Assembly: GCF_052425735.1 (NCBI RefSeq)
Contig: NC_135761.1
Span: 2,108,001 to 2,172,000, forward strand
Reading direction: 5' to 3'
Length of the DNA stretch: 64,000 nucleotides
Origin: Oculina patagonica
Taxonomy: Eukaryota
The position numbers and the translations under genes are program-made. Within the stretch, counting starts at the first letter, position 1, and every line of letters begins with the position of its first letter. Positions 3,001 to 25,171 of this stretch are shown here, in pieces. Below the pieces are notes generated by a model. The model ran no database searches and was not told the DNA's origin. It saw only the letters and a list, made by a program, of their open reading frames with translations.

Positions 3001-3830
3001 TGTACGGCTATGTACGGTTATGTAGGGCTATGTAGGGCTATGTAGGGCTATGTAGGGCTATGTACGGTTATGTAGGGCTATGTAGGACTATGTACGGCTA
3101 TGTAGGGCTATGTAGGGCTATGTAGGGTTAAGTAGGGCTATGTAGGGCTATGTACGGCTATGTAGGGCTATGTAGGGCTATGTACGGCTATGTAGGGCTA
3201 TGTAGGGCTATGTAGGGCTATGTAGGGTTATGTAGGGCTATGTACGGCTATGTACGTCTATGTAGGGCTATGTAGGGCTATGTACGGCTATGTACGGCTA
3301 TGTAGGGCTATGTAGGGCTATGTACGGTTATGTAGGGCTATGTACGGCTATGTACGGCTATGTACGGCTATGTAGGGCTATGTAGGACTATGTAGGGCTA
3401 TGTACGGTTATATAGGGCTATGTACGGCTATGTAGGGCTATGTACGGCTATGTACGGCTATGTACGGTTATGTAGGGCTATGTAGGGCTATGTAGGGCTA
3501 TGTAGGGCTAAGTAGGGCTATGTAGGGCTATGTAGGGCTATGTAGGGCTATGTAGGGCTATGTAGGGCTATGTAGGGCTATGTACGGTTATGTAGGGCTA
3601 TGTAGGACTATGTACGGCTATGTAGGGCTATGTACGGCTATGTAGGGCTATGTAGGGCTATTTACGGCTATGTAGGGCTATGTAGGGCTATGTAGGGCTA
3701 TGTACGGTTATGTAGGGCTATGTACGGCTATGTAGGGCTATGTACGGTTATGTAGGGCTATGTACGGCTATGTAGGGCTATTTATAGCCGTATATAGCTA
3801 TGTATAGCCGTGTATAGCTACGTAGGGCTC
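1..3830. repeat. 10-bp tandem satellite (TGTAGGGCTA)n, about 378 units, runs off the window start
   Basis: Strict 10-bp register to 3780 with variants TGTACGGCTA, TGTACGGTTA, AGTAGGGCTA and TGTAGGACTA; decays over 3781-3830; stop codons recur on both strands. Confidence 0.99.
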
Positions 3831-4648: not shown

Positions 4649-5236
4649 TTAAAGGGCGCCATAACTTTTCTTCGAATGCCGGGCAATCAAAGCTGCGTTC
4701 AACCTCTTGTATTTCAGTTTATATTCATCCCTTTCTCTGGCGACTTTTCTCAATTCTTCTTTCGCCTTGAATATTTCCAACTCAAGACTCGCATTTTCTT
4801 CCGTAATATTACCAGTCTTCTCTGAGTCTTTCTTTCGACATTTCAGAGCGTATTTACGATTCTTGAGGATTCGTCTTCGCTTTCTGAGCTTTCGCATCAG
4901 CGCTTCGGGAAGTTGACGAATTTGTTTGTTGAAGGCTTGGATAGACATCTTTTCAAGCTTCTCATCGCTTATTTGTGTGATTGTTTCGCAAGGAAGATGA
5001 TTTCGGTGCTTTTGTTGTCGTTTTGCATCATGATCATGCCCCGTCGTATTCTCGGGTACCAGACCAAAGTCTTCATGCGTGTCACCGTTAAAAAGATCCT
5101 CCGTATTCGATTCATTGTTGTTCATCGTTTCCATTGCATGTAAAGGATTCCAGTTTTCCTCAGATGAACAATCTGGTTTTAAGGAATATCGAGGAATCGC
5201 GTAATCCAAAAGAAAATCCTCTTCGCTTGACTCCAT
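4649..5236 (-). CDS. Maf: Maf-family bZIP transcription factor, copy 1 (divergent subfamily C), single exon
   Basis: Extended homology region ISDEKLEKMSIQAFNKQIRQLP, basic region KRRRILKNRKYALKCRKK, large-Maf-like zipper end RERDEYKLKYKRL. Likely ATG 5236 (MESSEEDFLL); the in-frame ATG at 5290 lies next to the promoter motifs. Confidence 0.88.
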   Translation of the reverse strand: MESSEEDFLLDYAIPRYSLKPDCSSEENWNPLHAMETMNNNESNTEDLFNGDTHEDFGLVPENTTGHDHDAKRQQKHRNHLPCETITQISDEKLEKMSIQAFNKQIRQLPEALMRKLRKRRRILKNRKYALKCRKKDSEKTGNITEENASLELEIFKAKEELRKVARERDEYKLKYKRLNAALIARHSKKSYGAL

Positions 5237-5297
5237 GTCTGAAACGTAATAACCTTTAGTTGTGTATTTGCAGTCATAACACGAAAGCATCTGTCAT

Positions 5298-5859: not shown

Positions 5860-6180
5860 CCTCCCAGATACCGGTTGGGCGCTCTAACCAACGGACCTAC
5901 GAGAGACTCGTGGTAAGCTGGGCCATTTTTACTAGGTTGATATGTGACACGCGTCCTGCATACTGCTAGGATCAGCAATGTCGAATTCATCAATTGTGTA
6001 GTAAATAATTAAGATGGTAAATTTTGAGCTCGGTGATAAATAGTAAAAATGTATTTTTCAACAATGACACGAGCATGGGACAAAGAACCCATGCCCCCCC
6101 CCCCCCCCCCAGATACCAGTTGGGCGCTCTAACCAACTGAGCTACGAGAGACTCATGGTGAGTTGGACTCGTACGTGGTG
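5860..6180 (-). repeat. Two copies of a tRNA-like (A-box) SINE/tandem repeat unit
   Basis: AGATACC(G/A)GTTGGGCGCTCTAACCAAC...CTACGAGAGACTC at about 5866 and 6111; the reverse complement TAGCTCAGTTGGTTAGAGC resembles a tRNA D-arm/A-box; no complete cloverleaf. Confidence 0.6.
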
Positions 6181-8073
6181 AGCTAGTCGGGAACCTTTAA
6201 AAATATCATCTGCCTAAAATATCATCGTATAACTGCCTAACGATGACATCGATATTGAAAACGATAGTTTACTCCTTTGCTGCCTTAATTTGATATGGTA
6301 GGGAAACGGTAACGTGTCTCTTCTTCCATTTCTTTATTCTTTCTCTCCCCCCCCCCCCCCCACCTCCTTCCATACTCTGTCCTTACCACCCTCCTTTCTC
6401 TCTCTTCACCTGACTTTCTCCTTCCGTCCCCTTTCACGCCTCCCCCCCCCCCCCCCCCTAACCCCCACTTCGCACCACGAGGCACTAGCCGAAACTTTTC
6501 CTTCCCGAGCAAATTCTTGGCGAACAAGCAAGACAGGTATGGCGACCGAACTGGCTTTGTGTACATACTTCGTATGAGAACACACCAAAAGGACTGTAGT
6601 CAGGCTGGTCGCCGATTGGGCAGAATAATACAAAGGGAATACAAAAGATTTTTCTGCCCAATCGGGAGGCAGTATTCAGAGAGGTTTTTGAACTGGTCTG
6701 GTAAGACACTTTCCCCAGGGGCACTTTCAGTCAATACAACTTTTTATATATGCCAATTTTTTGCGCGCAGTTTCGCGCTATTTTTGCCCGCAGTTTCGCG
6801 TTTCTTTCGCCCCCACTAACTGCCCCTGGGTCTCCGAGGATGTGATCAACGTAGCCGATGTTGGGAATGGTTTAGAATCTCCGGCAAAATTAAAAACAAA
6901 ATTAAACAATGAATTGGTAAATTATAAATCACCGGCAGCGCCCGTGGTATGCAGCTTTTTTAGTGGTTACATGCAAGAAATGTTTCACGTTCTGACAATT
7001 TTGAACCATAAATGATAGATAAGGTCTTTAGGTGGCAAAATATACTTACTATTATTATCGCCCACCCGGAAGGCAACGACTTTCAGTTTCGATTGATTAT
7101 ATATTCAGTTTTTAGTTTCGATATAAACATAACAAAACAACAAAACTACAAGATAGGCAGGTTAAGTTGACTGAAAGTAATGCGCATTATCTAACTAAAT
7201 ATTGGTCGTTTGTTAAAATTTTCACGGCGATTGAAGCTGAAACATAAAATTTGGAAATCGAATTCCAAACCTGATAGTCCTGCTTACATACAGACGTGGA
7301 GCGTAATGCGTGTACAACGCGCGAGTTGCGTGTTGCCGATCAGGGTGCATTGAACTCGTTTGGCCTGACGAGGGAGCAGATCACATTTCTCTCACGTTTC
7401 GCGATACTAGTAGTAAAGAGAAAATATTCTGCCATTTTATGGTACGCACCAAGAGCTGAATAGCACACTTTCGCAATTTTTTCCAGCAAATGCAAGCAGC
7501 TGAGTCAGTGTTTTCCTCTGAATGTGTCTCTTGCAATAAGTATTGGGATGAAGAACTTTCCACCACTTACATCTCTGTTTAATTGCCTTCATTTATTCGG
7601 ATTTTTTCCTTGTGGCCTATTTCTTCCATTGTTTAATCACCGATACGTTATTTTAGTGCTTTCAAGGTAACTATGCGTAACACTTCGTTAACCTCATTCA
7701 TTACCACAGTTAGAATGCCACAACAGTTACTTCCAGAACATTGTTTTTACTAGGATAGGTCAGGATAACTTACCAGTTATTAAAGTAATAATCTCATTTA
7801 TTGCTAGAATTATTTTTCGTTTCAGTTCAGCCTCGATTATTAGATACATCAAGCAAGCAACTGCTTAAGATGGAATGAACTATAATATGTACAAATAAAC
7901 TTTTAAAAGATGTACAACGTCAGAAACATCAGACATAAAATGCAAGCACAGGTTTTTGTAACTTTGTTGCACTAACTCAAAGTCTCTTTCAAAGGAACTA
8001 TCAATACTATTTTAAAATCATAGCCCAAACAGACACACCGCTCGGTACATGGGTACAGTTCAAAAGCTGCCAT

Positions 8074-8658
8074 CTAACGACAAGGCAGCGACTCTGAAGC
8101 TTCCGTCCCCTGCTTGTATACAGCAATGGATTGCTGCAACAGCAGATATTTTCTCTTGTATGCCTCCTTCTCTTTCCAAATCTTCAACAATTTCCATTTC
8201 CCGCCTTCCACCTGCTTCTTCAACAAGGTATTCTCATTCATCAGATCTTCCTGCTCTCGTTGTTTTCGCAGTCGACAAGTCAGGGCGTAACCCCGATTTT
8301 TCAGGTTTCTTCGCCGTTTTCTTATCCTTGCTGCCTCGTCCCATGGAATGTTCCGAAGACGTTTGTTCAGCTCTGAAACCCGAAGGTTTGCTATTTCTTC
8401 GTCGGTGATTACCTTTGCATCTCGGGTGCTCGATTCGTCGTCCCATGACACCGAGGATGCGTTGTCATCGTCCTGATCCACTTCTGGGTTTGTTTCACCG
8501 TCGAACAGATCTTGGATGTCGCGGTCATCTTGGTCGTCGGCCATCTTGTTGTTGTCCTCAGACAAAACGCTTTCCTGAATCCATGAAGAATCAAAAAGAG
8601 TGTTCGTCTTTTCACTGGGGAGATACAAATCAAACAGGTCACTGCAGTCTTCTTCCAT
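8074..8658 (-). CDS. Maf: Maf-family bZIP transcription factor, copy 2 (subfamily A), single exon, about 194 aa
   Basis: ITDEEIANLRVSELNKRLRNIP (EHR), RKRRRNLKNRGYALTCRLRK (Maf NRGYA signature), zipper ending EAYKRKYLLL; ATG at 8658 (the ORF track start is non-ATG). Confidence 0.92.
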   Translation of the reverse strand: MEEDCSDLFDLYLPSEKTNTLFDSSWIQESVLSEDNNKMADDQDDRDIQDLFDGETNPEVDQDDDNASSVSWDDESSTRDAKVITDEEIANLRVSELNKRLRNIPWDEAARIRKRRRNLKNRGYALTCRLRKQREQEDLMNENTLLKKQVEGGKWKLLKIWKEKEAYKRKYLLLQQSIAVYKQGTEASESLPCR

Positions 8659-8768
8659 ATTATCAGGTAGTGACAAACTCGAAACTGCAGTATTTTTACG
8701 ATAAACACGGAACGTCGAATGAATGACTCAATACTCTAGCAAGCAGTGATCTGTATGTTACTTTCCAA

Positions 8769-8849
8769 CCAATCAGATATGTTGTTGCTAACGTATGATG
8801 TGGGGAATTCCCTAATATAGAGTTCCAAGAATTTACATCTTTCCAAGAA
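8769..8849 (-). promoter_or_regulatory. Maf copy 2 promoter: CCAAT box, kB site and two GAS motifs
   Basis: CCAATCAGAT 8769-8778; GGGGAATTCCC 8802-8812; TTCCAAGAA 8823-8831 and 8841-8849. Confidence 0.75.
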
Positions 8850-10573
8850 TCTGCATCCACTTTGTATGCTTGGTTTTGCTTTTGTGCGATCTCAAAAAGG
8901 GCTTATTCTGATCCATACCAATAACTATAGAACTTTTTTCAAACGAAACGTCTGATGCCATAAAATTTTGTCATTGAACTTCTTCTCACTTAAAAGTGGC
9001 GAACCATTGTTTTTGTTATGAAATTGTTGATTCTATTTTTTATTAATGCTTCTAGTGTAAATAATGTGAAAACCTATAGATGCAGGTGATGTGAATACTT
9101 AAAACAAAATATCTTAGGCCAGTACCACGAGTTTCAAATAATTGTTTCTGTGTTCAGAAACTGTCTCGCCTGGATAACTATATTAACGACTGACGCTCGG
9201 AAAGAAAAATCTGTGTAAGTGTCGCACATAATTATGGTTCTCTGGTATATCATCATTATGCTCCATCTCTTCACCCCCTCCTCCTTTAGCTCTTCATTTC
9301 TGTTTACTCTCACCACTCCTTTTTCTGCACTTAAATCCCCCCCCCCCCCCCCCCCCTGCTTACCATAGCTAATACCACGACATCTTTAATTTGACAACCA
9401 CTCACTATCCTTCCGCCCACCTCTTGGTACAGGCACATTGGTTACTGCCACTTAATGCATGTAAGAAATATTTCACAACCTGGAAGATTTGAAAATGGAT
9501 TTAAGCTCGTGGTTAGCAAAATATATTCTTATTATCGCTCACATGGTAAACGATGTCTGCTACTTTGACCTACTTTCAGTCTCGATAAACAATTTATTGA
9601 GTTTCAGTTTCGATATCAACAGGCTAAATAAGCCGTAAGTAATGATGGGGTACTGGATGTTTCTAACGGGATCGAAGTCGCAAAAATGGAATTTGAAAAT
9701 CGAAAATAATCATCTGCTTATCTTTCGTGGATCGTGAAAAGTGTACAACGAGCGAGTTGCGTGTGGCCGAGAGGTTTTGGCCTCGCGAGGGAATGGATCC
9801 CACTTCCCGCACATTTTCGGATAATGAACAGGAAATGTTCTGCGTTAACTGGTACCAAAAGCTAAACAGATTACACATATCATAATTTTCACAAACAAAT
9901 GTTATATTTTGCTTTGCCACTTTGTGTATGCGTGCATCTGAGTCAGCGTTTTTTCAAGTTGTTATCTGTTATCATCAAGCATAAAAGAAAATCAAATTAA
10001 CCGAATGCGTCACTAGCGATGATTCCTCAGTTTTATTACCTATATTAAACTCAGTTGATTTGCCTTCACTTGTTGGCCTTTTTGTTTTCGGTCCAATTCA
10101 TGATTTTATCGGTGCAATTTTCGCTTCCAGTAATTACATACTTTAAATACTACGCCCTGAACACATTGTTTGTAGAGTTTAACGGTTTATGCCTTACTAA
10201 ACCTTACAGTTACTTAAGTTGTGCTCTTATTTATTGTTAGAATTGTTTACCATCAGTTCGTTCACGACTATTAATTATAAATACATTACGCTACTGCTTG
10301 ATATGGATTGAACCTTAATATTTACAATTATACTTTTTACACTGAAAAATGTACAACGGTAGATACGATTAAATTACTTATAATTAAAAGCAGGTTCGGA
10401 TTATCGGTTACCTTGGTCTACTAACTTTAAGCAACGTGGTAAATAGATGCAAAGTCTCTTTCAAAGGTACTCTTAAGTATAAACTATTTCAACCTTTGTT
10501 AACATAGCGCAAACTGTTACAGCGCTTGGTACAACTTAAGCTCAAAAGCTGTCATATTAGTCAACACAAAGTT

Positions 10574-11158
10574 CTAGGGACAAGGCAGCGACTCTGAAGC
10601 TTCCATTCCCTGCTTATGCACAGCAAATAATTGCTGCAACAGCAGATATTTTCGCTTGTATGCCTCCTTCTCTTTCCAAATCTTCAACACCTTCAATTTT
10701 CCGTCTCCCACCTGTTTCTTCAACAAGGTATTCTCATTCATCAGATCTTCCTGCTCTCGTTGTTTTCGCAGTCGACAAGTCAGGGCGTAACCCCGATTTT
10801 TCAGGTTTCTTCGCCGTTTTCTTATCCTTGCTGCCTCGTTCCATGGAATGTTCCGAAGATGCTTGTTCAGCTCTGAGACCCGAAGGTTTGCTATTTCTTC
10901 GTCGGTGATTTCCCTTGTATCTCGGGTGCTCGATTCATCGCCCCATGACACAGAGGACTCGTTGTCATCATCCTGGTCCACTTCCGGGTTTGTTTTACCG
11001 TCGAACAGATCTTGGATGTCGCGGTCATCTTGGTCGTAGGCCATCTTGTTGTTGTCCTCAGACAAAACACTTTCCCGAATCCATGAAGAATCAAAAAGAG
11101 TGTTTGTCTCTTCACTGGCGAGATACAAATCCAGCATGTCACAGCGGTCTTCTTCCAT
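10574..11158 (-). CDS. Maf: Maf-family bZIP transcription factor, copy 3 (subfamily A), single exon
   Basis: Close paralog of copy 2; KNRGYALTCR; ATG at 11158. Confidence 0.92.
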   Translation of the reverse strand: MEEDRCDMLDLYLASEETNTLFDSSWIRESVLSEDNNKMAYDQDDRDIQDLFDGKTNPEVDQDDDNESSVSWGDESSTRDTREITDEEIANLRVSELNKHLRNIPWNEAARIRKRRRNLKNRGYALTCRLRKQREQEDLMNENTLLKKQVGDGKLKVLKIWKEKEAYKRKYLLLQQLFAVHKQGMEASESLPCP

Positions 11159-11271
11159 GTTAATATCAGCTGGTGACAAAAATGAAACTGTGCTATTCTT
11201 GCGAGAAACACGGAACGTCGAAGAAATGCCTCAATATTCTAGTAAGCAGTGATCTGTATGTTATTTTCAAA

Positions 11272-11352
11272 CCAATCAGATATCTTGTTGCTAACGTATG
11301 ATGTGGGGAATCCCCCATTATAGAGTTCCAAGAACTCAGATCTTTCCAAGAA
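11272..11352 (-). promoter_or_regulatory. Maf copy 3 promoter: CCAAT box, kB site and two GAS motifs
   Basis: CCAATCAGAT 11272-11281; GGGGAATCCCC 11305-11315; TTCCAAGAA 11326-11334 and 11344-11352. Confidence 0.75.
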
Positions 11353-13055
11353 TCTGCATCTACTTTGTATGCTGGTTTTGCTTTTGTACGATCTTAAAAA
11401 GGGCTTATTTTGATCCATACCAATAACGATTGAACTTTTTTCAAACGAAGCATCTGATGCCATAAACTTTGTCATTGAACATCTTCCCACTTACAGGTGA
11501 CGAACCATTGTTTTTGTTATGAAGTTATTGATCTAATCTATCTTTCATTAATGTTTTTCGTGTAAATAATGTGAAAACCCATAGATACAGGAGATGTGAA
11601 TGCTAAAAGCAAAACAACTTGAGCCAGTACCTGGAGTTTCCAATTAACATTTTTGTGTTAAAAAAAATGTCTAACTTGGATAACTATGTGTACAACTGGC
11701 ACTGGGAAGGAAAAAAACTGTGTTAAGTGTCGCACACAGTGGCTTTTGGTACACCTCCAAAGCACTACATCCCTCAATCCCGTCTCCTTTTATCTCTTCA
11801 TTTCTGTTTACTTTCCTTGCTACCTTTTCTCCACTTATTTCGCCCCTTACCACTGCTAATACCAATATTTTTGACAACCACTCAATATTACTTACGCCCA
11901 CCTCTTGGGACAAACACATAATTTAATACATGCAAGACTTGTTTCACAATCTGGCAGTTTTAACCAATAGACGTGAAGCCTTTTGTTAGCAAAATATATT
12001 CTTATTATCGCCCACATGGAAACCAATGTCTGTTGGCTTTGGCCTACTTTCAGTTTCGATAAACAATTTATTGAATTTCAGTTTCGATATCAATAGGCTA
12101 AATTAGCCGGAAGTCATGATGGGGTATCATCTTAAACAGTACTGGGTGTTTCTAACGCGATTGAAGTCACACAAAGGAAAAAATAACTAATTATCTGCTT
12201 TATCTCGTGGATCGTGAAACGCGTATAACGCGCGAGTTGCGTGTGGCCGAGGGGTTTTGGCCTCGTGATGGAATAGATCCCACTTCTCGCACGTTTTCGG
12301 ATAATGAACAGGAAATGTTCTGCGTTAACTGGTACCAAAAGCTAAACAGACTACATATATCATAATCAGTTCACAAGCAAATGTATATTTTGCTTTGCCA
12401 GTTTGTATATGCGTGCATCTGAGTCAGCGTTTTTTCAAGTTGTTAGCTCTTATCATCAAGCATAAAAGAAAATCAAATTAACCGAATGCGTCACTAGCGA
12501 TCATTCCTCAGTTTTATTACCTATATTAAACTCAGTTAATTTGCCTTCACTTGTTGGACTTTTTTTTCTGGTCCATTTCTTCCATAACTTTATCGCTGTA
12601 ATTTTTGCTTCAAGTAATTACAGCTGTACATACTTCAAATACAACGCCCTGAACACGCTGTTTGTAGAATTTAAGAGTGTATGCCTTACTTATCCTTACA
12701 GTTGCTAATGCTATGATCTCATTTATTGCTAGAATTGTTTTGCAGTTCGGCCTCGACTATAATATAAATACATTGCGCTACTGCTAAATATGGATTGATC
12801 TTGTTATGTACAATTATAATTTTTACACTGAAAAATGTATACAGTAGATATGGTTAAATTTCTTATAATTTAAAGCAGGCACAGATTTTCTGTAACCTTG
12901 GTCCGCTAACCGTAAGCTAATTTACGTGGTAAATAGACGCAAAGTCTCTTTCAAAGGAATTAAGTATATTTCGACCTTTGTAGCATGGCCCAAACAGTCA
13001 CAGCGCTTGGTACAACTACAGTTCAAAAACTGCCATTTTTTTTCAATGCAAAGTT

Positions 13056-13640
13056 CTAGCGAAAAGACAGCGACTCTGTAGCTTCCATTCCTTGCTTGTG
13101 CACAGCAATAGATTGCTGTAACAGCAGATATTTTCTCTTGTATGCCTCCTTCTCCTTCCAAATCTTCAGCACCTTCAATTTTCCGTCTTCCACCTGCTTC
13201 TTCAACAAGGTATTCTCATTCATCAGATCTTCCTGTTCTCGTTGTTTTCGCAGTCGACAAGTCAGGGCGTAACCCCGATTTTTCAGGTTTCTTCGTCGTT
13301 TTCTTATCTTTGCTGCCTCGTCCCACGGAATGTTCTGAAGACGCTTGTTAAGCTCTGAGACCCGAAGGTTTGCGATTTGTTCGTCGGTGATTTCCTTTGC
13401 ATCTCCGGGGCTCGATTCGTCGCCCCATGACACCGAGGATGCGTTGTCATCGTCTTGATTGACTTCCAGGTTTGTTTCACCGTTGAACAGATCTTGGATG
13501 TCGCGGTCATTTTTGTCGTCGGCCATCTTGTTGTTGTCCTCAGACAAAACGCTTTCTTCAGGCCAAGGAGAATAAAAAGCAGTGTTTGTCACCTCACTGG
13601 CGAGATACAAATCAAGCATATCACTGCAATCTTCCTCCAT
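13056..13640 (-). CDS. Maf: Maf-family bZIP transcription factor, copy 4 (subfamily A), single exon
   Basis: Close paralog of copies 2 and 3; KNRGYALTCR; ATG at 13640. Confidence 0.92.
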   Translation of the reverse strand: MEEDCSDMLDLYLASEVTNTAFYSPWPEESVLSEDNNKMADDKNDRDIQDLFNGETNLEVNQDDDNASSVSWGDESSPGDAKEITDEQIANLRVSELNKRLQNIPWDEAAKIRKRRRNLKNRGYALTCRLRKQREQEDLMNENTLLKKQVEDGKLKVLKIWKEKEAYKRKYLLLQQSIAVHKQGMEATESLSFR

Positions 13641-13780
13641 GTTATCAGTTGAAGACAAAATTAAGGTGTTCAGTTTTTTTCGAAACTGCAGTACACGTAA
13701 CGAAGAAATGACTCAGTCGTTTAGCAAATACTTCGTGCATCAATTAAACGCTTCTTGCATCAGAACGATGCCAAATGCCA

Positions 13781-13862
13781 CCAATCAGATTTCTTGTTTA
13801 TAACGTAAAGTGTGGGGAATCCCCTAACTATTGAGTTCCAAGAATTCACACTTTTCCAAGAA
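13781..13862 (-). promoter_or_regulatory. Maf copy 4 promoter: CCAAT box, kB site and two GAS motifs
   Basis: CCAATCAGAT 13781-13790; GGGGAATCCCC 13814-13824; TTCCAAGAA 13836-13844 and 13854-13862; motifs retained although flanks differ from copies 2 and 3. Confidence 0.78.
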
Positions 13863-16212
13863 TCCAGGTTCCACAGCCTTGTATGGTAACAGCTTGCTTT
13901 TTCCCATGTGAAACCTGAAAAGGACCTGTGCTGCGCCATACCAATGACATATCATTGCAAATTTTCCCAAGCCATTTTGATCGATTTCGCTGAATATTTT
14001 TCGTTTCTATGACAACAGCAATAAATACGTAAACTTTTAATAACTTTATAATAAGTAGACTCACTTGGATTACACAATGTGTCGAGGTAGTGGGAGGAGC
14101 TTATCAATGAAAAAGGAGTGAAGTTGGGGCTAGGGGCCTCATGGAGGTTTTACGGCATGTAAGTTAACATGTAAAGTAAAACATGTTTATTTTAAGAGCC
14201 CCGAGGACCCGGAAGTAAACCTGGTCCGCGTGTTATGTTTAAAACTTAATTGCGTCACATCGATGTTTGTTGCCACTCAATCCAATAAATAAAAACAGCC
14301 ATTGTGCATGATATTTACGTTTCAACATAAAAGAGTTTTACTTCAAAAATAATATGATCACTTTAAGTTATCATATTTGGTGATTTTTTTACAGAGAAAT
14401 GAAGTATTTGGGGAGGAGGTTTTGCTGGAAATCGGAGATGAGTGACAAGGGGTATAAAGGGTGTGCGCCTAAATTTGTATGTTCTGTTTATCACGATGTA
14501 GTATGGTGATATTAACTGAGTCAGCCATGCCGGAGTTTGTGTTCATAAAAGCTTTTGGGATGTGGGGAGGGGGGGGCTTTTAACTTTCTAAGGTTTACGG
14601 TTCGATAGTTTTTAGGCAATACAATTGGAAGGGATTTTTCCCTTTCTGGTTTACTTACGTCAAACGAAACGAGAATGTTCAAAGCGGAAAAACAACTTGA
14701 CTAAACTATTTACATGAAGGATTAGACTGTGTCAGCTATAAAACAACGTTGCTTAGCCTGCACATGCCTCAAATGTTTATAGAGTGCGGTAATTTTATCG
14801 TGTCGAAAAGTTTTTAAAAAATTAAATTGAAGTGGTCGAGTAGGCAAAGGTTGCGATTGCTTGGAAATTGAGGCAGGATACAAACGAGACACGCTGAATG
14901 ATTATACCAAATATTTAGTAACATTTTGGTTGTTTCCAGAGAGATTTAATGAATTTTTGCCTACATAAGTATTTACCCTGACTGTTTGGAAAGATGGGAA
15001 GGGAATTACCCTTGCTTTCTCTTTTTGCTGCGAGCATAGTACAATCACGTGACCAGGTGGTCTCAGATTTGCTTTGATTGTGTTCCTTGCAGTAATCTAC
15101 AGCTAACAGTAATCCTGTCCGACAACTTTTATTGCTCCTCAAAATTAACAGGCAGTCTTCGGTAAGGGATCTAGATGTACCAAGATCAGAAATAAGGCAT
15201 TCGCAATGTGCAGTGTTTAGCCAATCAATAAAGGGTTCTTGTGATACAGGGAAACGGGATAAATTGTTTTAAGATCACGAAATATGTATTTTTATTTAGT
15301 AAGGTCACTGTATAACGGTAGATCCAATTTAATGCCTGACTTAAACATGTTACGTATACTACGGACCTCAAAGCCGCTCGCGTGACAGTCAATGATCGAT
15401 TGTTAATTCATGATGACTGTTCAATTCAACTCGTGATAAACACTTATCATTACAGGTCATTACAGATCAGATATCAATATTTCGTCACGAGGTAAAACAT
15501 TGTTTCTTCCTTAAAACAACCTCATCAACATTTGCAGCAATGAAAGGGTATTTTTCCTTCTTCGATGCGAATGGTGCAAGACTTCATCGACCTAACCAGA
15601 TGAATAGATTCCGTACTTACAAAATTAAGGAGTCCGCAAGGGATTGCGTTATTCACTATTTATTATTGAGGCGATCACTTTAGTAAACCCTATTCTATTT
15701 ATTTTGTTCATCTAAATAAAAATATTTTTACAACAATAGGCTCCTGGCTTTTTTCTGTATGTTAGTAATGCTGGTAAGCAAGTCTTTGTTACTTGTGACT
15801 TGACCTGACTTTGATATTTCTCAATGCAAATCCAGTAAATCCAGTGTAAACAACAAGATTGCGTGACCTTCATTCAAAATGCAAATATCCGTAATGTTTA
15901 TTGAATTGTGTCAAAGATCGTAGTTATTCACTCGATAGGGAACGAAGACCCCAGAGACTGTTTGGGGAAATCGAGCCTAAATCATGCTTTGACAAAATGT
16001 GCCTTTATTCCCTACTCGAAAATCTATGGAGGTATATGCTTAATTTTATATGATTATTTGGAAGGAATAAGTAGGCTGTTTAGCATGCATGAATTCCCCG
16101 AAATTGGTTCGGGTTCTCTGAAAACCTCGTGCTCTCGGGCTTTAAGGAGTGGCGCGCCTGTTGCTTCAAATTGTCTCAAATGCGGCCTTGAAAACGACTG
16201 GTTTTTCAGCTA

Positions 16213-16391
16213 TAGTTGAATCCCGATTATTCAAACCTTCAAGGGAAATCGAAAAAGGTTCAAGTTATCGGGGGTTCGAGTTATGGAGGGCAAAATTAGT
16301 AAGAATATGGCCCGAATGGAATCGAAAACGGTTCGAGTAAACGGGACTGAGGTGCGAGTTATTGGGGGTTCGAGTTCTCGGGATTTAACTG
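16213..16391. mobile_element. Tc1/mariner(pogo)-like MITE
   Basis: Imperfect TIRs TAGTTGAATCCCGA...TCGGGATTTAACTG with TA on both sides; internal GTTCGAG repeats. Confidence 0.7.
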
Positions 16392-17522
16392 TAATTATGT
16401 CAGTGGAAACCGTTTAAAGGCATAAATAAAACACATGAAAATCAAGCTTTCAACTGTCTTTCAAGGGTCTGCTTTCAACTGGCTTTCAAGAAACTGTGAA
16501 TGAGTCGTCTTCACTTAAACCCGTATACATCCTGTAGCATACCTTACAAGCAGTCTTTATCTTCCATCACAAAACGATTGACTACTGTACAAATTGAAGT
16601 GATCATTCACCAAGATTATACAAATCCTATGAGGTTTTTTGGGTTAATAAACTTTACGAAACTTCTGGATTGATCAGGTTAACAGCACACGGGTGCAATT
16701 TCGTCATAACTGAAACGAACATTCGCAAGCCGTCCAAAACAACACCCACAACATTTCAACAACATATTTATTCTCAAAAATGGTGGGGTTTTTTTAATAT
16801 ATACTTATTTCCATCTCTTTGGCGTAATATTTTGTACAATTTCGCTCATAAATTTAAAGTAATAGCAATTAATTTAAATAACTTTGTCGTGTTGCTCTGA
16901 GACAAACGGTTTCAGTGTCAGAACATAATAATTTTAACCACAATTCGTGAAAATATGAACTATCGATTACAACGCGGAAAAAATACATCTCTATATTTAC
17001 GTATTCGTTTAAGTAGCGTATGAAAATGTTGTACATTTTAAAGTCAAAACTACTGTGGCGCTGTACAACAAATTTCACAGAAAAATAATTCGAATTAAGT
17101 TAAGAGCTTGATATCGTTCGAGTTATATATGAAATCGATACAGAAACTCCGAATTGACAAATCTTAAAATTATCCACAGCGAAATACGACTGATGGAAAT
17201 AACTTAATTAAGCGAGGTATATATACAAGTTGTACACATCACGGACGCTACTCAGGAAAGTAACTTTCCTTGGTCGCTACTCGACACTATAAACTACAAG
17301 ACTCACTTGCTACAATGAAGAAATACATGTATGTTAATCCGAGAGCCAATTACGGAGAAATAATTATAAATCAACAGTCACCCTGCAACTTGGACCTTAC
17401 ATCACTTTTGAGCTTAACAGTTTACGTTCGGTCTTTCACCCTGAATCAACGCAATCCGATAAATCCCTGGACGGAAGAAATTGTAAGACTCCAACACGCA
17501 GTCAAAATAAGCTTACTGTTTC

Positions 17523-18098
17523 TCAGCCTTTAGACGTAGGTAGCGTATAAGCAATAAAAGTCTTGTGCAATTGTTGTTCTAAATGTTCTAATTTCCTCTT
17601 GTACATGTCCCTGTCCTTCGCTGCATTACAAAGGTTTTCTTTTGCCTCGCGTAGCTGTGCTTTCAAGCGTTGGTTTTGTACTTCGAGGCTTTCCTTCATC
17701 GCTGTTCGCCTCTGTCGACAACTCGTGGCATAACCTCGGTTCTTCAAACTTCGCCTCCTCTTTCGGATCCTATGGGCCTCCACTTTCGGCAAACTTTTCA
17801 GCCGCTTGTTAAGATCTCGTATTGACATCTTAATCAAGTCCTCGTCGGAAAACAGTTCGCTATAAGCTTGCAAATTCTGTGGGCTTTGAGGCTCGCTGCT
17901 AATAGTGGACGCCGAGTCATCGAAGCCGTCGAGATTTAGTCGCGTCTGCAACAGAAGGTTCTCCAGGTTGTCTTCGCCAACAAGGTCTCCCAAACGGTGG
18001 CTCTGCGACCAGTTAGAACTGCAAACATCATTAGTATATTCCCTTTCCAGAATTTCGTCCATCGGCGAAATATCAGAGAAGAGTTCGTCGTAATCCAT
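17523..18098 (-). CDS. Maf: Maf-family bZIP transcription factor, copy 5 (subfamily B), single exon
   Basis: FSDEDLIKMSIRDLNKRLKSLP followed by RKRRRSLKNRGYATSCRQRR; ATG at 18098 (MDYDELFSD). Confidence 0.93.
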   Translation of the reverse strand: MDYDELFSDISPMDEILEREYTNDVCSSNWSQSHRLGDLVGEDNLENLLLQTRLNLDGFDDSASTISSEPQSPQNLQAYSELFSDEDLIKMSIRDLNKRLKSLPKVEAHRIRKRRRSLKNRGYATSCRQRRTAMKESLEVQNQRLKAQLREAKENLCNAAKDRDMYKRKLEHLEQQLHKTFIAYTLPTSKG

Positions 18099-18201
18099 GT
18101 TAACTAACTTGCGATCAAACCCGAAATGAAACACCTGATTGTACAAAGTCGAGCGTTATTTGATTAAAATCGGTTAACCGCTGGGGGTCGCTTGTATTCA
18201 T

Positions 18202-18349
18202 CCAATCAGATCTCAGGATTTTGACAGGTTCCCAACCCTCGCGGAGTTGTGAAACGGGGAATCCCCTAAATCGCTCGCTAGCTTTTCAGCATTTCAGCAG
18301 ACTCTCGGAGCACGTAACAGTAAAGGCCGAAGAAAAATCGTTCTAGGAA
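18202..18349 (-). promoter_or_regulatory. Maf copy 5 promoter: CCAAT box, kB site and GAS motif
   Basis: CCAATCAGAT 18202-18211; GGGGAATCCCC 18256-18266; TTCTAGGAA 18341-18349. Confidence 0.72.
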
Positions 18350-18635
18350 CTTTAAATATTGAGTATTGTTTTCTTCCCGATGAAAAAAGACCTCAACTTC
18401 ATAGCCCTTGTTCAGAAAACGGAAATTCAAACAAGTATTTTGTCGGCGATTTGCGATTACGTCATCTGTAGATTAATATATTTTTAGGCATTTTAACAGT
18501 GTTGAAGATTCAAAAATATATAACTCGAACGATCTAACTTCTAACCGAGGAGTTTGTTTTTCTTTTCGGATACCATCTGATTGTACCGTTCGAGTTATTT
18601 TCCACAGGGAGGGTAAATCGCACCAAAAACACGAC

Positions 18636-19999
18636 GGGAAAGTCCCTTTCAAGCTGCAGGCCAACACAAATAATTAAACAATGCGAAATATGTGAATATC
18701 GAATAGCTCGCCGCTCTGAAAACATTAAATCGCTAAATTCAAAAATGTAGTGAAAAAAAGGAGTGTTTTTATAGCGTAAGAAAAATTTACAAGCAAATAA
18801 TATATTTTTTATTGTGTAAAGCAATGGAATATGCCAAAACGCTTTTCATTCCAAATTTCAAGTGTCACAAACAAGGCAAAAGGGAAAAACCCCTTCGGAA
18901 GGAAAACAATGAAAGCATCTAATTTCAGATGCAAATTTCACTTTCGAAACCGATAATCGTCATTCCTAAAATAAAATTAACAATTTAATTAATTCTCTCT
19001 CGGCAGTTTTTGCCGTTTTGCCGTTAAAGTTTGTATTTTTCTTCATTGTTTTCGCTTCTTACCTTTCAACTTTAATTCTGTACTTTCATTTTGCGCTTAA
19101 TTTCATTCCAACCTCCATGGCGCATGGCTAGACTTTTGAGTAATTTGCAAAAAGGGAAAATTCCCTTAACCTTTGGGGGCCAAGAATAAATATCACTCTT
19201 CGCACGTATATTCTCCATGTTTCCTTAACAGTTTGGTTGTCAATGTCAAAACGTCAAATTTTCATTTGCGAAATATGTCAAGTAGCTGAAGCAGTCCGAG
19301 CGAGAATGCGAAATTTTTAATATAACCAGTTGTGCCTGACTGAAACGGGGGGTGCTTTCCAGCATCTTCACTGTTTGTGGGGGGAGTGGGTGGGTCGTCA
19401 AACATGGGTGAAAATAAAGTTGACATTGAGCAAACTACAAGAAAAATTCACGAAGTTTAAGTGCCTAGGCTGTTTCTCGTACTGAAACATAAAACTCTTC
19501 TCAAATCTACAACACCCGCGTACAAGGAAACGCGAAGTCCGTGATTTTCAGTTCAGACTGTCGCGTCCCGCATCTATCCCGTCCCGTCGCGTAAAGAGAT
19601 ATGTTTATGCTCGTATACATAGAACATGCATTTGGTAATGAAAACAGGACCAATATACGGCGCGGTATAGGACCAACATTTCAAAATGTTTATATTAATT
19701 TTGAGCGGACAGAGAACTTATTATTAAACACGCGATATTTTGAGGGAAATTCCCTGCCCGTGTTGTATCGATATCTTAGTTTCGATTCCAAGATGTCACG
19801 AAAATTGTTTCTAACTTTATTGAAGAGTGTAGCTAGTTAGCGCATTGCAAATTAAGATACATTTGAGGGAGCGTTGGCACAAGAACTCACTGTTTAACAA
19901 AGCATCATTTGTGCAAACAAACTGTGATGATACTCATTCTGCTGCCAAAACAATTAGGACATTGTTTTATAGAGGTGAAAAGTAATTAAGGGATTCCCC
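18636..19999. promoter_or_regulatory. Cluster of additional kB-like and IRF-like sites in the divergent intergenic region
   Basis: GGGAAAGTCCC 18636-18646; GGGAAAAACCCC 18882-18893; TTTCACTTTC 18936-18945; GGGAAAATTCCC 19154-19165; GGGAAATTCCC 19744-19754; GGGATTCCCC 19990-19999. Confidence 0.6.
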
Positions 20000-20129
20000 A
20001 AAGCTTGTTTTTGTAATACATGGTACTTTCCCTTACCTACAATAAAAACCACGCTTACCCTAATATTCAAAGCCTTTTTAACAATTTTCTCCATCTGTGA
20101 AGTTGACAGAAGAACAATTTCACACAGAA

Positions 20130-20590
20130 ATGGTTGTACCTTCTGTAGATAAATTTGGAGACGAGAGTTTTGCTTGGAATGAAATCCAAGAGATTAATGA
20201 AAATATGCCCAGTACAGGTCTGTTAAATGGCGTTTACACGATTCAAGACTCTCAAGAGTCCGGATTCGCATCAGAAAATACAGCGAGGCGTAGAGAAGCG
20301 ACTGGAAGACATCGACAAACGGATGAACGCCCCGATCCACTCAAACTGATTAGAAAGTTAACTGACGAGTACTGAAAAGATTCGATCCAAGATGAAAGAG
20401 CTTCGACGCCCCAAAAGAGCAGAGAGAAATAGAAGGAGAAGGCGGAAAGAAGAAAGGAAGGCGAGGAGGGAGAGGAAAAAACGAAAAGATGAAGTCTGAG
20501 CTCGAGTTACTCCAAGGAAAGAAGAATGAGGGCGAGGAGAAGAAACCAGAACACATCAAGACAGGACGAACGCGGACAGAGGGATAGCAG
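20130..20590 (+). pseudogene. Frameshifted bZIP-like relic (possible eighth cluster member)
   Basis: Acidic ORF from ATG 20130 to a stop at 20375; other frames give KIRSKMKELRRPKRAERNRRRRRKEE (basic-like) then NEKMKSELELLQGKK (zipper-like); kB site about 130 bp upstream of the ATG. Confidence 0.45.
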
Positions 20591-20864
20591 CGAAACCCCA
20601 GAGCCAGGAGAGGGTATAAACTGCGTGACACAGAACCATCTAAGCGCGCGACTTTTGATCACACAAGTATTTCTCTGACATTGTTGAAATACTTTGTAAT
20701 TGAAGGAACAGTCAAGTCTTTAATTTCAAACTGTATAAAAGGAAGACTTAATTTTAAAGAGCTGGCCTTCATATGCAAAACCTGATACGCCTTGTAGCCA
20801 TTCCATCAAGAATTTCGACTTGCTTTCACTCAAGTTCGAGAACGATCACACTAAACAGACTGTA

Positions 20865-20939
20865 GGGGATTCCCCGTTACGTAACCATAAGTGGGTGTAG
20901 CCAAAAATCAAATCTGTCAAAACTCCGCGCTCTGATTGG
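20865..20939 (+). promoter_or_regulatory. Maf copy 6 promoter: kB site, PAR/NFIL3-type palindrome and CCAAT box
   Basis: GGGGATTCCCC 20865-20875 abutting GTTACGTAAC 20876-20885; CTGTCAAAA...TCTGATTGG (to 20939) is shared with the copy 5 promoter. Confidence 0.75.
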
Positions 20940-21002
20940 ATGCAAGATGGATTTCCATCATGGACCCGGCCATGTGTTCATTTTACTGCTACTGGGCGCA
21001 GG

Positions 21003-21575
21003 ATGGTGAGCGAAGTGCTTTTTGCTGATGTGTCGCCCATGGACGAAATTTTGGAAAGGGATTTCACTGATAATGACTGTACTTCAAGCTGGATTCAAAG
21101 CAATTGTTTACAAGAGCTTTTTAGCGAGAAAGACGATATGGAAAACACTTTGTTGCAGTCGCCACTAAGCCATTTTGATGGCGCTGAGTCCGCCACGAGC
21201 AGCGAGCCTCAAAGCCTGCAAAGTTTGCAAGATTTCAGCCAAGAAATCACCGATGACGAGTTAACGAACTTATCCATACGGGATCTAAACCAACGCTTGA
21301 AAAGTTTACCGAAAGAGGAGGCTCAGAAGATTAGAAGGCGAAGAAGAAGCTTGAAAAACCGTGGCTACGCTACGAGCTGTAGACAGAGGCGCACAGCATT
21401 AAAGGAAAGCCTGCAAACAGAAAACCAGCGCTTGAAAGATCAGATACGCGAGGCAAAAGATCACCTTTGCAAGGCAGTGAGAGATAGGGACTCTTACAAA
21501 ACGAAATTCGACCAGTTAAACAAAGTTTATGCAACGTTAAATACACCTTCTTTTGTTATGAAACATAAACAGTGA
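21003..21575 (+). CDS. Maf: Maf-family bZIP transcription factor, copy 6 (subfamily B), single exon
   Basis: ITDDELTNLSIRDLNQRLKSLP followed by RRRRRSLKNRGYATSCRQRR; the N-terminus aligns with copy 5 from ATG 21003 (ATG 20940 abuts the CCAAT box). Confidence 0.93.
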   Translation: MVSEVLFADVSPMDEILERDFTDNDCTSSWIQSNCLQELFSEKDDMENTLLQSPLSHFDGAESATSSEPQSLQSLQDFSQEITDDELTNLSIRDLNQRLKSLPKEEAQKIRRRRRSLKNRGYATSCRQRRTALKESLQTENQRLKDQIREAKDHLCKAVRDRDSYKTKFDQLNKVYATLNTPSFVMKHKQ

Positions 21576-24375
21576 TGGCAATTGTGAAGACATAAGTATT
21601 ATAGTGGAACGAGGAACTTTATATTATTGAGTTAAGTCATACGTGATTGTGGACTATAAATAACAGAGATTGGAGTTATGCGGGTGAATTGCAGCGATTG
21701 TCCATTTTATAATTCTAACTGTGATATCGGATGAAGGTTAGTCTAAATTCTTATTTCATATGTATTTTGTTCATTCATTGCTGCTGAGTCATCACGATTG
21801 GGAAGCAAGGCGTATTCTCTCCCGGTCACACTTTTCAAAGTAACGTTAAGAGTAAAAATGTTTCGTTTTTTATTTGCATAGCAATGTTGTACGTTTCAAA
21901 CATATAATTGTTTTCCGTGTGTTATTTTGATTGTAAACTGCTGATCCAAACGATTCCGCTTAAGCCCGGGATAAAAACGATGTTGACGAGATGCCATGCC
22001 ATGTGATGCATTTAGATTTTTGTTTACGATAGCAAAGTTATACCAGGCCGTGATATCAAGACAACACTCTTGGGCATTATTTTCTTTAAATAAGATGTAA
22101 ACTTCTTGCGCTTTTGTTTGTGATAAGCCATGTAAATAGCCGTGAAGAGCAAAAATCGTATAAACTTGTATGGGGAATTGTACATAATGTATACTTGAGA
22201 AATGGTCTGAAAACAAGTGTATTGAAACTAAATGATATGTTCTTGAATGAAGCAAAATTTGTCGAAATGTAAGCATTGTAATTCATTTACAAAGTTAACA
22301 GAGACATTACTTTTTTGGTCATTCGAGGGTTTAGTTTTTTTTATATTTGTTTGGCGTAGTGAATATTTAGTTTCTACATCGTTCTACATGTATATAAAAC
22401 TATATTTGTACATTTAAAGTCTTTATTTTTGAACGTCGCAAAACGCAATCCCACTAACTCAGTTGCAATTAAGCTTCCAAGTTTACAAACTGGGCAAATG
22501 AAAGTTAAGATAGTTACAAATAAGAAACGTATAACTACAGTTTTGAACACAAATTGCAACTTTGTTGTTTTGAATGTATTGTGTAAACCACGGGTTGAAA
22601 TTACACTAGGAATAATTTCAGGAGTTCTGTACAAAACTCTTGAGGACTTTTTGTAAATAAACTGAGAGCTCAACACTTGTGTGATGGCAATGTCTAGTAG
22701 CTTCTTAAAATATCGCACCCTAGCCCACTTAATTATAAGATAAGGTTAAGAGGAAATGACTGTGAACTTATAAGCAATGTCATATTAAGGGAAAACCACA
22801 AATTTAGAGTTGCTGGTGTTTACCAGTACTGATGCTGCCCGTTTAAGATATATCACTGCTTTTCGATGTATACATTTTGTGAAAACCGCAGGGGTATTTA
22901 AAACTCGAGGCTGGACTCTGACATGTCTTTCATCGAGCTGTTTACGATGTAACCTTCAAGTTATCCTTCTCTCAGTATTTAATTTGGCTTGCAGCTCTTG
23001 TAAAAAATTTTCTTCACAGCTAGTGCTCAACTTCAAGTTCCTTGACAACATCAAAATATTAGTGTTTAGCAGAGCTGAGTGTGGCAACGGTCAGATAAAC
23101 CGGAAGCTCTGTGATCACGTGGTTGTTTCTGATTTACCCTTTAAGGCCAAGGGCCAACATACACATCCCCCCTCCCCCTCCCCCACTGGCTTTAATATAT
23201 CAGATTGTATTAGTAAGGATAATTGTTTTAATAATTTAACAATTCCTAGTGACGATCTGCTGAATTCTCAACACGTTAAATACAATGAAATTTTTTTGTT
23301 GCTCACCCTTAGGCTTAAAGAGCTTTTGTCAGGTGAAAATATAAACTTAAAGGGCAGCCTTCAAATTTAATTTTTTGTTTTTTCTGTATTTAAAGGTGCT
23401 TACCTCTGTTAAAATAATTATTTATTCTACCTCTATTTCAACTTATAGGAATGTAACTGTAAAGGTGGCCATTCGAAATGCTAATATACTTAATAAATCA
23501 AAACACACATGTTTAGCCTGTCACCATGGACCTCCTCCTTTCTACAGGGCTGTCTTGGACACTTACAAATGTTTTCGAGCATGAATTTTGCTTACACTTG
23601 AAGTGAAGTTAGGGTCATGTATGGTTATTTAAAACCTATGAAGTAATTGATTCAAGGACCTCAACTTTATTTCCGCGTCTCGTGCGAAAGTTAAGCCAGT
23701 GGCAGTCTGTGGTTAGAAACCTATTTCCACTGACCAATCACAGCGTGCGCAGGTTAGACTTTCCACAAGGCCGCCGCAATCGAGCACTTTTTCCCCTTCG
23801 AGAACTTGTGATTTTGGCAATCCAACCGAAGATCCCGAAGAACAAGTGGCGCACGACGTCCGAAGAACGAAGGCCGAACCGAGGAACACGAAGACCTCGG
23901 CCCAAACAACACCGCCAGCGCTCCGATATCTCACGACTCAGTCAAAATCCTGTAGATAAGATGATGCACCCCAAAGGGAAATAGCAGAAGATAGAAGAGC
24001 GTTGGAGGGTGAGCCTATCAGAAGTGGAATGGATCAACTTGAGAACTTTGAGAAATACGGGCAACTTTGGGAAATCTCGAGCACTGTGGAAAGCCCTAGC
24101 GCAGGTGCATGCCAGCGAGGACGAAAGCAAGAACTGAAAAAAAGAAAAAAAAAGAAAAAATAACTGAGCGGCAACGACAATCGACATAAATATTTAAAAC
24201 AAATTACATAGAGGAAGACTTTCGTTTTAAACCTGTCGCTAGACCAATTTATAGAAAGTAACATATTATTTGAGCTTGATCACAAAAAGCCCGCCGATCG
24301 ATTGTCAGTAGGATTTCAAATTGTGGTTATTTTTCTGACAAGGCAGAAAGTTATGATTGCCTCATGGCGGCAGAA

Positions 24376-24499
24376 TTCTTGGAAGGCTTTTCGAAAATTC
24401 TAAGAACTTTATTATTAGGGGATTCCCCCCGAGCAATGAAAATGAAACTTTTCCTCCTGGGAGATTTGATTTGCTGGCAGGAAATTGGGGAAAACTCCC
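24376..24499 (+). promoter_or_regulatory. Maf copy 7 promoter: two GAS motifs, kB site, ISRE and a second kB-like site
   Basis: TTCTTGGAA 24376-24384; TTCTAAGAA 24398-24406; GGGGATTCCCC 24418-24428; GAAAATGAAACT 24438-24449; GGGGAAAACTCCC 24487-24499. Confidence 0.75.
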
Positions 24500-24583: not shown

Positions 24584-25171
24584 ATGGAGGGAAATTTTGA
24601 CGACGTATTTGATTTGTATCTCACTGGCGAGGGGCAGCGCATTTTGGAACCTCCATGGACAGAACGAGCCAGTTTGTTCGAAAGAAACAATTATTGCAAC
24701 ACAGGTGCTATCGGTGAAGATCGCGATATCCAAGACCTTTTCGACGGTGAAACAACCAACAATTTGAAAGCAAATGACTCTTCATCTGAATCTGAAACCG
24801 AGAACTTGCTACCTCCTCGTGATGCTAAAGAAATAAGCGACAAAGAAATACAAGGTCTCCGCGTACAAGATCTTAACAAGCTTCTTCGGGACCTCCCGAG
24901 GGACGAGGCGGCAAAGATAAGAAAGAGGCGACGTAACTTGAAGAACCGAAGCTATGCCCTGACATGTCGCCTTCGGAAACAGCGAGAGCACGAAGATCTG
25001 ATGAACGAGAATACCTCATTGAAAAGACAACTGGAAGATGAAAGAAGAAAGCTGAGGAACGTGTGGAATGAGAAAGAAGAGTACAAAAGAAAATATGTAC
25101 AGTTGCAGAGGGCCTTTACTGTTTACAAGCAAAACAAGAAGACAGGTCTGAAGATGTCACCATGTCGCTAA
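24584..25171 (+). CDS. Maf: Maf-family bZIP transcription factor, copy 7 (subfamily A, diverged), single exon
   Basis: MEGNFDDVFDLYL...DRDIQDLFDGET...ISDKEIQGLRVQDLNKLLRDLP followed by RKRRRNLKNRSYALTCRLRK; ATG at 24584. Confidence 0.92.
   Translation: MEGNFDDVFDLYLTGEGQRILEPPWTERASLFERNNYCNTGAIGEDRDIQDLFDGETTNNLKANDSSSESETENLLPPRDAKEISDKEIQGLRVQDLNKLLRDLPRDEAAKIRKRRRNLKNRSYALTCRLRKQREHEDLMNENTSLKRQLEDERRKLRNVWNEKEEYKRKYVQLQRAFTVYKQNKKTGLKMSPCR

Follow-up and report, generated by a model that had tools for sequence, protein, structure and literature searches.

Paired STAT-type palindromic words beside a kB palindrome in the promoters of one subfamily of coral Maf genes

The locus and the question

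Do the promoters of a Maf gene cluster in the coral Oculina patagonica carry maintained sites for STAT next to sites for NF-kB? The question is raised by a 64,000-nt stretch of contig NC_135761.1 (assembly GCF_052425735.1, forward-strand positions 2,108,001 to 2,172,000; hereafter the window, in which position 1 is the first letter), which between 4 and 26 kb holds seven intronless bZIP_Maf genes (PF03131), each of about 190-210 codons. An earlier note, made from the letters of the window, had pointed to tandem gamma-activated-sequence (GAS) words, TTC-N3-GAA, beside an NF-kB (kB) site in the promoters of copies 2, 3, 4 and 7, which we call subfamily A. Our analysis suggests that the paired words, of the form TTCYNRGAA, are selectively maintained proximal-promoter sites of subfamily A, likely bound by the coral STAT.

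The promoter module in the window

The elements of the four subfamily-A promoters are the following (window coordinates, strand, element).

8841..8849, minus strand: copy 2, distal GAS-like word (TTCTTGGAA in gene orientation), a block of conserved alignment columns
8823..8831, minus strand: copy 2, proximal GAS-like word, starting 19 bp upstream of kB in gene orientation
8802..8812, no strand: copy 2, kB palindrome GGGGAATTCCC
8769..8776, minus strand: copy 2, CCAAT box (CTGATTGG in gene orientation)
11344..11352, minus strand: copy 3, distal GAS-like word
11326..11334, minus strand: copy 3, proximal GAS-like word
11305..11315, no strand: copy 3, kB palindrome GGGGAATCCCC
13854..13862, minus strand: copy 4, distal GAS-like word
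13836..13844, minus strand: copy 4, proximal GAS-like word
13814..13824, no strand: copy 4, kB palindrome
13781..13788, minus strand: copy 4, CCAAT box CTGATTGG
24376..24384, plus strand: copy 7, distal GAS-like word TTCTTGGAA, with exact TTCNNNGAA in 6 of 7 copy-7-type assemblies
24398..24406, plus strand: copy 7, proximal GAS-like word TTCTAAGAA, matched exactly in 5 of 7 assemblies and with one mismatch in 2 of 7
24418..24428, no strand: copy 7, kB palindrome GGGGATTCCCC
24438..24449, plus strand: copy 7, interferon-stimulated response element (ISRE)/IRF-like word (GAAAATGAAACT; GAAANNGAAAC), kept in all 7 copy-7-type assemblies just past kB
24487..24499, plus strand: copy 7, second kB-like word GGGGAAAACTCCC, with 8 of 13 columns invariant and the kB pattern matched in 3 of 7 assemblies

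The words stand where the earlier note had placed them (TTCCAAGAA at 8823, 8841, 11326, 11344, 13836 and 13854, TTCTTGGAA at 24376, TTCTAAGAA at 24398, and TTCTAGGAA at 18341), and the tandem arrangement beside kB was recovered in all four subfamily-A promoters. The claimed distance of about 10 bp distal to kB was measured as 10-11 bp, on the gene-distal side of kB, and the pair spacing is 18 bp from start to start in copies 2-4, as had been given, and 22 bp in copy 7. Both words are TTCYNRGAA in each subfamily-A promoter of the window (all 8 window sites have the exact palindromic TTC-N3-GAA core, as do most of the orthologous ones), and the proximal word starts 19-21 bp upstream of the 11-bp kB palindrome. 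The layout in gene orientation is GAS, 9 or 13 bp, GAS, 10-11 bp, kB, ~28 bp, CTGATTGG, with the ATG 150-185 bp past kB.

Each of the seven promoters of the cluster has one kB palindrome of the type GGGGAWTCCCC, and when the seven are aligned, T184 and TGATT (186-190) of the CCAAT box are invariant, its first C and first G being variable. Across the window, TTCNNNGAA gave 36 matches against 22.3 +/- 4.2 expected (36 was reached in 0 of 100 shuffles), and the kB pattern (GGGRNWYYCC-type decamer) gave 39 against 5.2 expected. A single word in copy 5 had also been counted as part of the pattern; this did not hold, the word at 18341 lying 75 bp from the copy-5 kB and being absent from all copy-5 orthologues examined, and it is probably a chance match.

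Some further words were seen in the intergenic regions. A TTCNNNGAA pair 20 bp apart occurs at 16094-16122 (TTCCCCGAA, TTCTCTGAA), between copies 4 and 5, with no adjacent kB, and neither of its centres (CCC, TCT) fits YNR. In copy-6-type and some copy-1-type promoters (window 20865-20886), TTACGTAA or TACGTCA, a PAR/CREB-type bZIP word, follows the kB palindrome directly or after a few bases and is kept across species (L001, L002, L004, L006, L008, L010). Copies 5 and 6 are divergent, and the intergenic region between them (18147-20940) has extra kB-type matches at 18637, 19744, 19990 and 20865.

Conservation across corals

Homologous clusters were retrieved from other coral assemblies, including records named Orbicella faveolata and Desmophyllum pertusum. 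The protein tree of the Maf genes resolved four supported clades (copy-1-type, copy-5-type, copy-6-type and subfamily A, the last with support 100/95). Subfamily A divides into a single basal gene (L024), copy-7-type genes (one gene per assembly, 7 assemblies) and copy-2-type genes, which several species have expanded in tandem. When 21 non-redundant subfamily-A modules were aligned, the columns were conserved as follows.

TTC/GAA half-sites: 95% conserved
Central three bases of the words: 79% conserved
Spacer between the words: 58% conserved
Spacer to kB: 63% conserved
kB: 94% conserved
CCAAT: 85% conserved
Flanks: 40-49% conserved

Divergence of the half-sites at the background rate, which the note had named as the result that would speak against it, is thus not what the alignment gave (95% compared with 58-63% in the spacers and 40-49% in the flanks). 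The word centres vary (TTG, TTA, TAG, TAA, CTG, CTA, TCG, TCA), almost always within YNR, and the half-sites are retained, which is how a palindromic dimer site is expected to behave.

The words also distinguish subfamily A from its relatives: of the 25 subfamily-A genes, 24 have an exact TTCNNNGAA no more than 50 bp upstream of kB, compared with none of the 24 genes in the other three Maf clades, all of which retain kB. In 18 of 24 genes when exact words are counted, or 20 of 24 when those with one mismatch are included, the proximal word begins 19-22 bp upstream of kB; the distance from its centre to that of kB is therefore about 21 bp, or two helical turns. In all 7 copy-7-type assemblies the paired words are spaced 22 bp apart, although their spacers have turned over; copy-2-type genes have a pair spacing of 18-20 bp, and the basal gene, L024, carries only one word, 20 bp from kB. 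At least nine further coral assemblies, and the two old gene types alike, have the words at identical offsets, and copy-7-type promoters contain a block of ~150 bp that is nearly base-for-base conserved. As judged from these alignments, subfamily A maintains the paired TTC-N3-GAA words beside kB, which none of the other Maf clades of the cluster does, and the GAS-like words are very probably functional elements.

Genome-wide occurrence of the module

Pattern searches were run over the 529-Mb genome, each with a reversed-pattern control. The full arrangement, GAS-(9-13)-GAS-(6-16)-kB, occurs at these four promoters only (control, 0). Tandem GAS pairs alone were found in 316 places compared with 79 in the control, many of them within repeats, and a single GAS 8-13 bp from an 11-mer-type kB gave 20 matches (~19 distinct places) compared with 4 in the control. 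Among the genomic matches is a GAS word 13 bp from kB directly upstream of two tandem genes at C4:16710253 and C4:16720106 (L025, L026), both of which encode an orphan multi-pass membrane protein; a Pfam search with it returned no match. An identical 33-bp GAS-kB-like string was also found seven times (C2:13.13 Mb, C3:3.62 Mb, C14:13.54 Mb, C10:13.95 Mb), and six of the seven stand in inverted pairs ~14.8-15.0 kb apart, with the look of terminal repeats of a large mobile element.

Position relative to transcripts

Contigs from four public runs were mapped to positions 8000-13999. The RNA-like contigs cover three gene bodies (copies 2-4) together with ~650 nt of 3' flank, and not intergenic DNA. 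For copy 4 they set the following limit.

13709..13724, minus strand: copy 4, upstream limit of RNA-like contigs, approximate transcription start (contigs of two runs)

The two copy-4 contig ends, 13709 and 13724, lie 69-84 nt upstream of the ATG and short of kB; the contig ending at 13724 runs into adapter letters, and depth is zero from 13800 on. The transcription start of copy 4 is therefore placed ~84 nt upstream of the ATG, and measured from this approximate start the distal GAS lies at about -134, the proximal GAS at about -116, kB at about -95 and CCAAT at about -60. The GAS-GAS-kB module is probably upstream of the transcription start, in the proximal promoter.

Two other words were noticed near the start. 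A TATA-like TTTAAT lies ~22 bp upstream of the copy-4 contig end; it is not common to copy 2 and is not taken as a TATA box. Several subfamily-A genes have the word TGAGTCA (AP-1/Maf half-site) 65-75 bp upstream of their ATG (13709-13715, the 8586-8592 region, and orthologues), apparently just inside the transcribed region.

STAT as candidate binder

One STAT locus was identified in the genome (C7, ~18.348-18.361 Mb, plus strand), with exons that match the N-terminus, coiled coil, DNA-binding domain, linker and SH2 domain, and a search of the genome with the most conserved STAT exon found no second copy. Six-frame Pfam searches of the genome with STAT_alpha and STAT_int were blank because the STAT exons are short; the exons were found by direct reading of the locus. 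The nearest solved structures to the coral STAT are STAT5A/5B, followed by STAT6, and its DNA-binding motif TFIIEKQPPQVLKIQTKF is one position off STAT5B, the string VVVTVHGNQ being of STAT5/6 type. Both TTCTTGGAA, long used as a probe for STAT5, and TTCTNAGAA, the motif of STAT5 in chromatin immunoprecipitation sequencing, are classic STAT5-type sites, and the YNR centre therefore suits a STAT5/6-like coral STAT. The STAT5 consensus has been given as TTCNNNGAA (PMC4990345). Taken together, STAT is the best candidate for the factor that binds the words, and probably the right one, its main rival being another dimeric factor.

For the second partner, the genome has two loci with exons of the Rel-homology domain (RHD), one at C4:57.03 Mb and one at C7:20.84 Mb. 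In Nematostella immune cells, homologues of the Maf family, NF-kB1 and IRF2 are expressed, and a STAT5A homologue is raised after poly(I:C) (PMC13319465); in Exaiptasia infected with Vibrio, a MafB-like transcript falls into one cluster with NF-kB (PMC7654579).

Several observations weigh against maintained promoter sites bound by STAT. The contrast between subfamily A and the other clades has a Fisher P of 4e-13, a value that is overstated since the genes are related. One of the two words is lost in L001_17033, L001_19301, L003_657 and L004_10001, so the pair is not obligatory, and because the words of copy-7-type promoters sit inside the ~150-bp conserved block, the contrast with the spacers is weaker there than in copy-2-type promoters. 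On the transcript side, the run type "RNA" was only guessed, and one low-depth contig (8836-9005) lies upstream of the copy-2 kB. As for the protein, Nematostella has a single STAT whose knock-down left cGAMP-induced genes unchanged (PMC8713801), so that the cnidarian STAT is without a demonstrated immune target. Finally, a conserved palindrome implies a dimeric factor and does not name it.

Alternative readings of the words

The last point is the basis of the alternative that survives best, although we consider it unlikely: the words are real and conserved, and are bound by a factor other than STAT, such as a BCL6-like zinc-finger repressor, NFAT/Rel on the GGAA core, or an uncharacterised cnidarian dimer. 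Conservation alone cannot name a binder, BCL6 sites overlap GAS sites, many of the distal words read TTGGAAA and so resemble an NFAT core, and a second Rel-homology locus exists. However, symmetric conservation of the half-sites around a variable centre suits a palindromic dimer better than an asymmetric zinc finger or monomeric NFAT; the trailing A of TTGGAAA is not retained in copy-7-type genes; the variants TTCTAAGAA and TTCTCAGAA are without any TGGAA core; and the YNR centre is the STAT5-type consensus, in agreement with a coral STAT that is STAT5/6-like.

If STAT is the binder, the two words might further constitute a STAT tetramer site, in which dimers bridged by their N-domains would give cooperative, switch-like activation. 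We regard this as doubtful. The gaps between the tandem words are 9-13 bp, a spacing of roughly the required length that varies little within a gene type and is no specific mark of a tetramer, and the pairing of a strong with a weaker word, which is frequent in tetramer sites, is seen in some orthologues. The first STAT exon also aligns to the N-domains of STAT1 and STAT3, and has a tryptophan wherever the STAT1 stretch WLEKQDW has one, but the match is weak (E = 0.12-0.5; 0.12 at best). In mammals the gap most favoured in STAT5 tetramer sites is 11-12 bp, or 20-21 bp from centre to centre (PMC4990345), and the mammalian spacings that allow N-domain bridging have peaks at gaps of 6-7, 11-12 and 16-17. 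The window has gaps of 9 and 13, and its centre-to-centre distances of 18 and 22 have near-zero feasibility in STAT5A models, which peak near 20-21 (PMC4990345); gaps of 10-11 (19-20 from centre to centre) are found in other species. The spacing also differs by gene type (18-20 as opposed to 22), and several genes keep one word only. The suggestion that the tandem GAS words support STAT tetramers therefore stands as to the tandem pair and is weak as to the spacing, 18 and 22 being valleys of the model.

Two further readings have very little likelihood. In the first, the words would be functionless, with copies 2-4 as recent duplicates and copy 7 as a chance match; the mutual identity of copies 2-4 does prove little, as they are ~90% identical 2.5-kb repeats, but the words recur at the same offsets in other corals and in both old gene types across spacers that have turned over, and they are absent from all 24 sister-clade genes, which makes this highly improbable. 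In the second, the words would be heat-shock elements bound by HSF, TTC and GAA being building blocks of these elements as well and corals mounting strong heat responses, and this scarcely credible reading was rejected on spacing, as a heat-shock element requires inverted nGAAn units in a 5-bp register (TTC-N2-GAA) and every conserved word here is N3.

A possible mechanism and its relation to known systems

Under the preferred reading, that of maintained sites bound by STAT, the coral's single STAT (closest to STAT5/6) would occupy each word as one dimer, NF-kB would sit on the adjacent palindrome, and an NF-Y-type factor would take the CCAAT box, so that subfamily-A genes would be switched on by a combined signal input, probably of immune or stress signals. 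Both the cooperation of STAT with NF-kB and the inducibility of the genes are inferred here. Because canonical JAK architecture has been reported in Bilateria only (PMC3670263), STAT would have to be activated by another tyrosine kinase, a step that is purely conjectural; an anemone STAT has been reported with N-terminal sequence (PMC3670263). The wider proposal, that JAK-independent STAT and NF-kB (with IRF in the older copy-7-type genes) converge on a module of fixed geometry, which would drive a lineage-specific family of small Maf-type transcription factors, expanding in tandem, as immediate-early regulators of immunity or stress, is tentative, and we would give it less than even credence. 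If it were true, the STAT and NF-kB (and IRF) promoter grammar of the vertebrate cytokine response would predate bilaterians, and in the subfamily-A genes a cnidarian STAT would have its first defined direct targets.

The nearest counterparts of the words themselves are mammalian STAT5 sites and their tandem arrangements (beta-casein, CIS, IL2RA PRRIII), which have the TTCYNRGAA core and the tandem arrangement in common with the coral, whose STAT is closest to STAT5/6. They differ in that the window spacings of 18 and 22 are off the mammalian peak of 20-21, in that STAT binding to the coral sites is predicted, and in that no canonical JAK is expected upstream in the coral (PMC3670263).

Composite promoters with GAS and kB are found in vertebrate IRF1 and ICAM1, where, as in the coral, a STAT word and a kB word share one short proximal promoter of a gene induced by signals, as the coral gene would be; the coral gene is itself a transcription factor. 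The coral promoters differ by having two GAS words, a fixed gap of ~10 bp to kB and a lineage-specific Maf-type target, and the animal has no known cytokines or interferons. Among invertebrates, the Drosophila Turandot (TotA) genes require both STAT92E and Relish, and the likeness to the coral lies in a clustered stress/immune gene family with STAT and NF-kB-type input. However, the fly has a full JAK/STAT pathway, its targets are secreted peptides and not transcription factors, and no fixed-phase GAS-GAS-kB module is known from it. Copy-7-type promoters, in which two GAS words, kB, the IRF-like word and the second kB share ~125 bp of nearly invariant sequence, also recall, in their dense packing, an enhanceosome of the interferon-beta type, from which they differ in element order and in factors; no interferon is known in the coral. 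The description of the module as vertebrate-cytokine-like logic in an invertebrate is thus borne out for the pairing of GAS with kB and overstated as to its novelty for invertebrates, given the Turandot genes.

The composite STAT/NF-kB promoter is accordingly an element kind known from vertebrates and flies. What appears to be new, as far as we could find, is a candidate composite promoter of the STAT/NF-kB type in a cnidarian, its phase lock with kB, its confinement to one clade of a lineage-specific Maf family, and its junction with conserved IRF-like and second kB words in copy-7-type genes. Our literature search found no paper on the coral Maf cluster or its promoter, and on coral MafB-like genes or coral kB/GAS promoters it returned nothing specific except PMC7654579.

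To our knowledge, cnidarians possess one STAT and lack a canonical JAK, no direct STAT target gene or function has been established in them, and the subfamily-A genes would give the cnidarian STAT its first concrete candidate targets. Their short, deeply conserved promoter is a concrete sequence with which to ask about the role of the coral STAT and its cooperation with NF-kB, and the sister Maf genes, which keep kB and have no GAS words, offer a natural contrast for separating STAT from NF-kB input, useful for coral immune, symbiosis or bleaching studies.

The Maf gene cluster and other features of the window

The seven genes of the cluster are listed below.

4649-5290, minus strand: copy 1, bZIP_Maf gene
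8074..8658, minus strand: copy 2, intronless bZIP_Maf gene, 194 aa (PF03131, E = 4e-19)
10574..11158, minus strand: copy 3, bZIP_Maf gene
13056..13640, minus strand: copy 4, bZIP_Maf gene
17523-18098, minus strand: copy 5, bZIP_Maf gene
20940-21575, plus strand: copy 6, bZIP_Maf gene
24584..25171, plus strand: copy 7, bZIP_Maf gene, 195 aa

Copies 2-4 are units of a 2.5-kb tandem repeat. Protein homologues of the Maf genes were found in stony corals only, the named ones being Orbicella faveolata (71% identity) and Desmophyllum pertusum, and the protein searches gave no subfamily-A homologue under the names of complex-clade corals or sea anemones. The gene order is kept in other coral assemblies, with a copy-5-type gene (opposite strand) followed by copy-1-like, copy-6-type and copy-7-type genes. 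A short open reading frame at 20097-20375 resembles the N-terminus of the copy-1-like gene that other corals have between their copy-5 and copy-6 types; a bZIP part was looked for and not found in it, and it may be a decayed gene.

The window begins with a 3.8-kb satellite (1-3781) with a 10-bp unit, GTAGGGCTAT, that is ~90% regular and accounts for the strong GC skew at the window start. A 62-bp repeat is present in two copies (5860-5921 and 6105-6166) that are 89% identical and have a tRNA-like look; ARAGORN called no tRNA in it, and the repeat may be a tRNA-derived short interspersed element.

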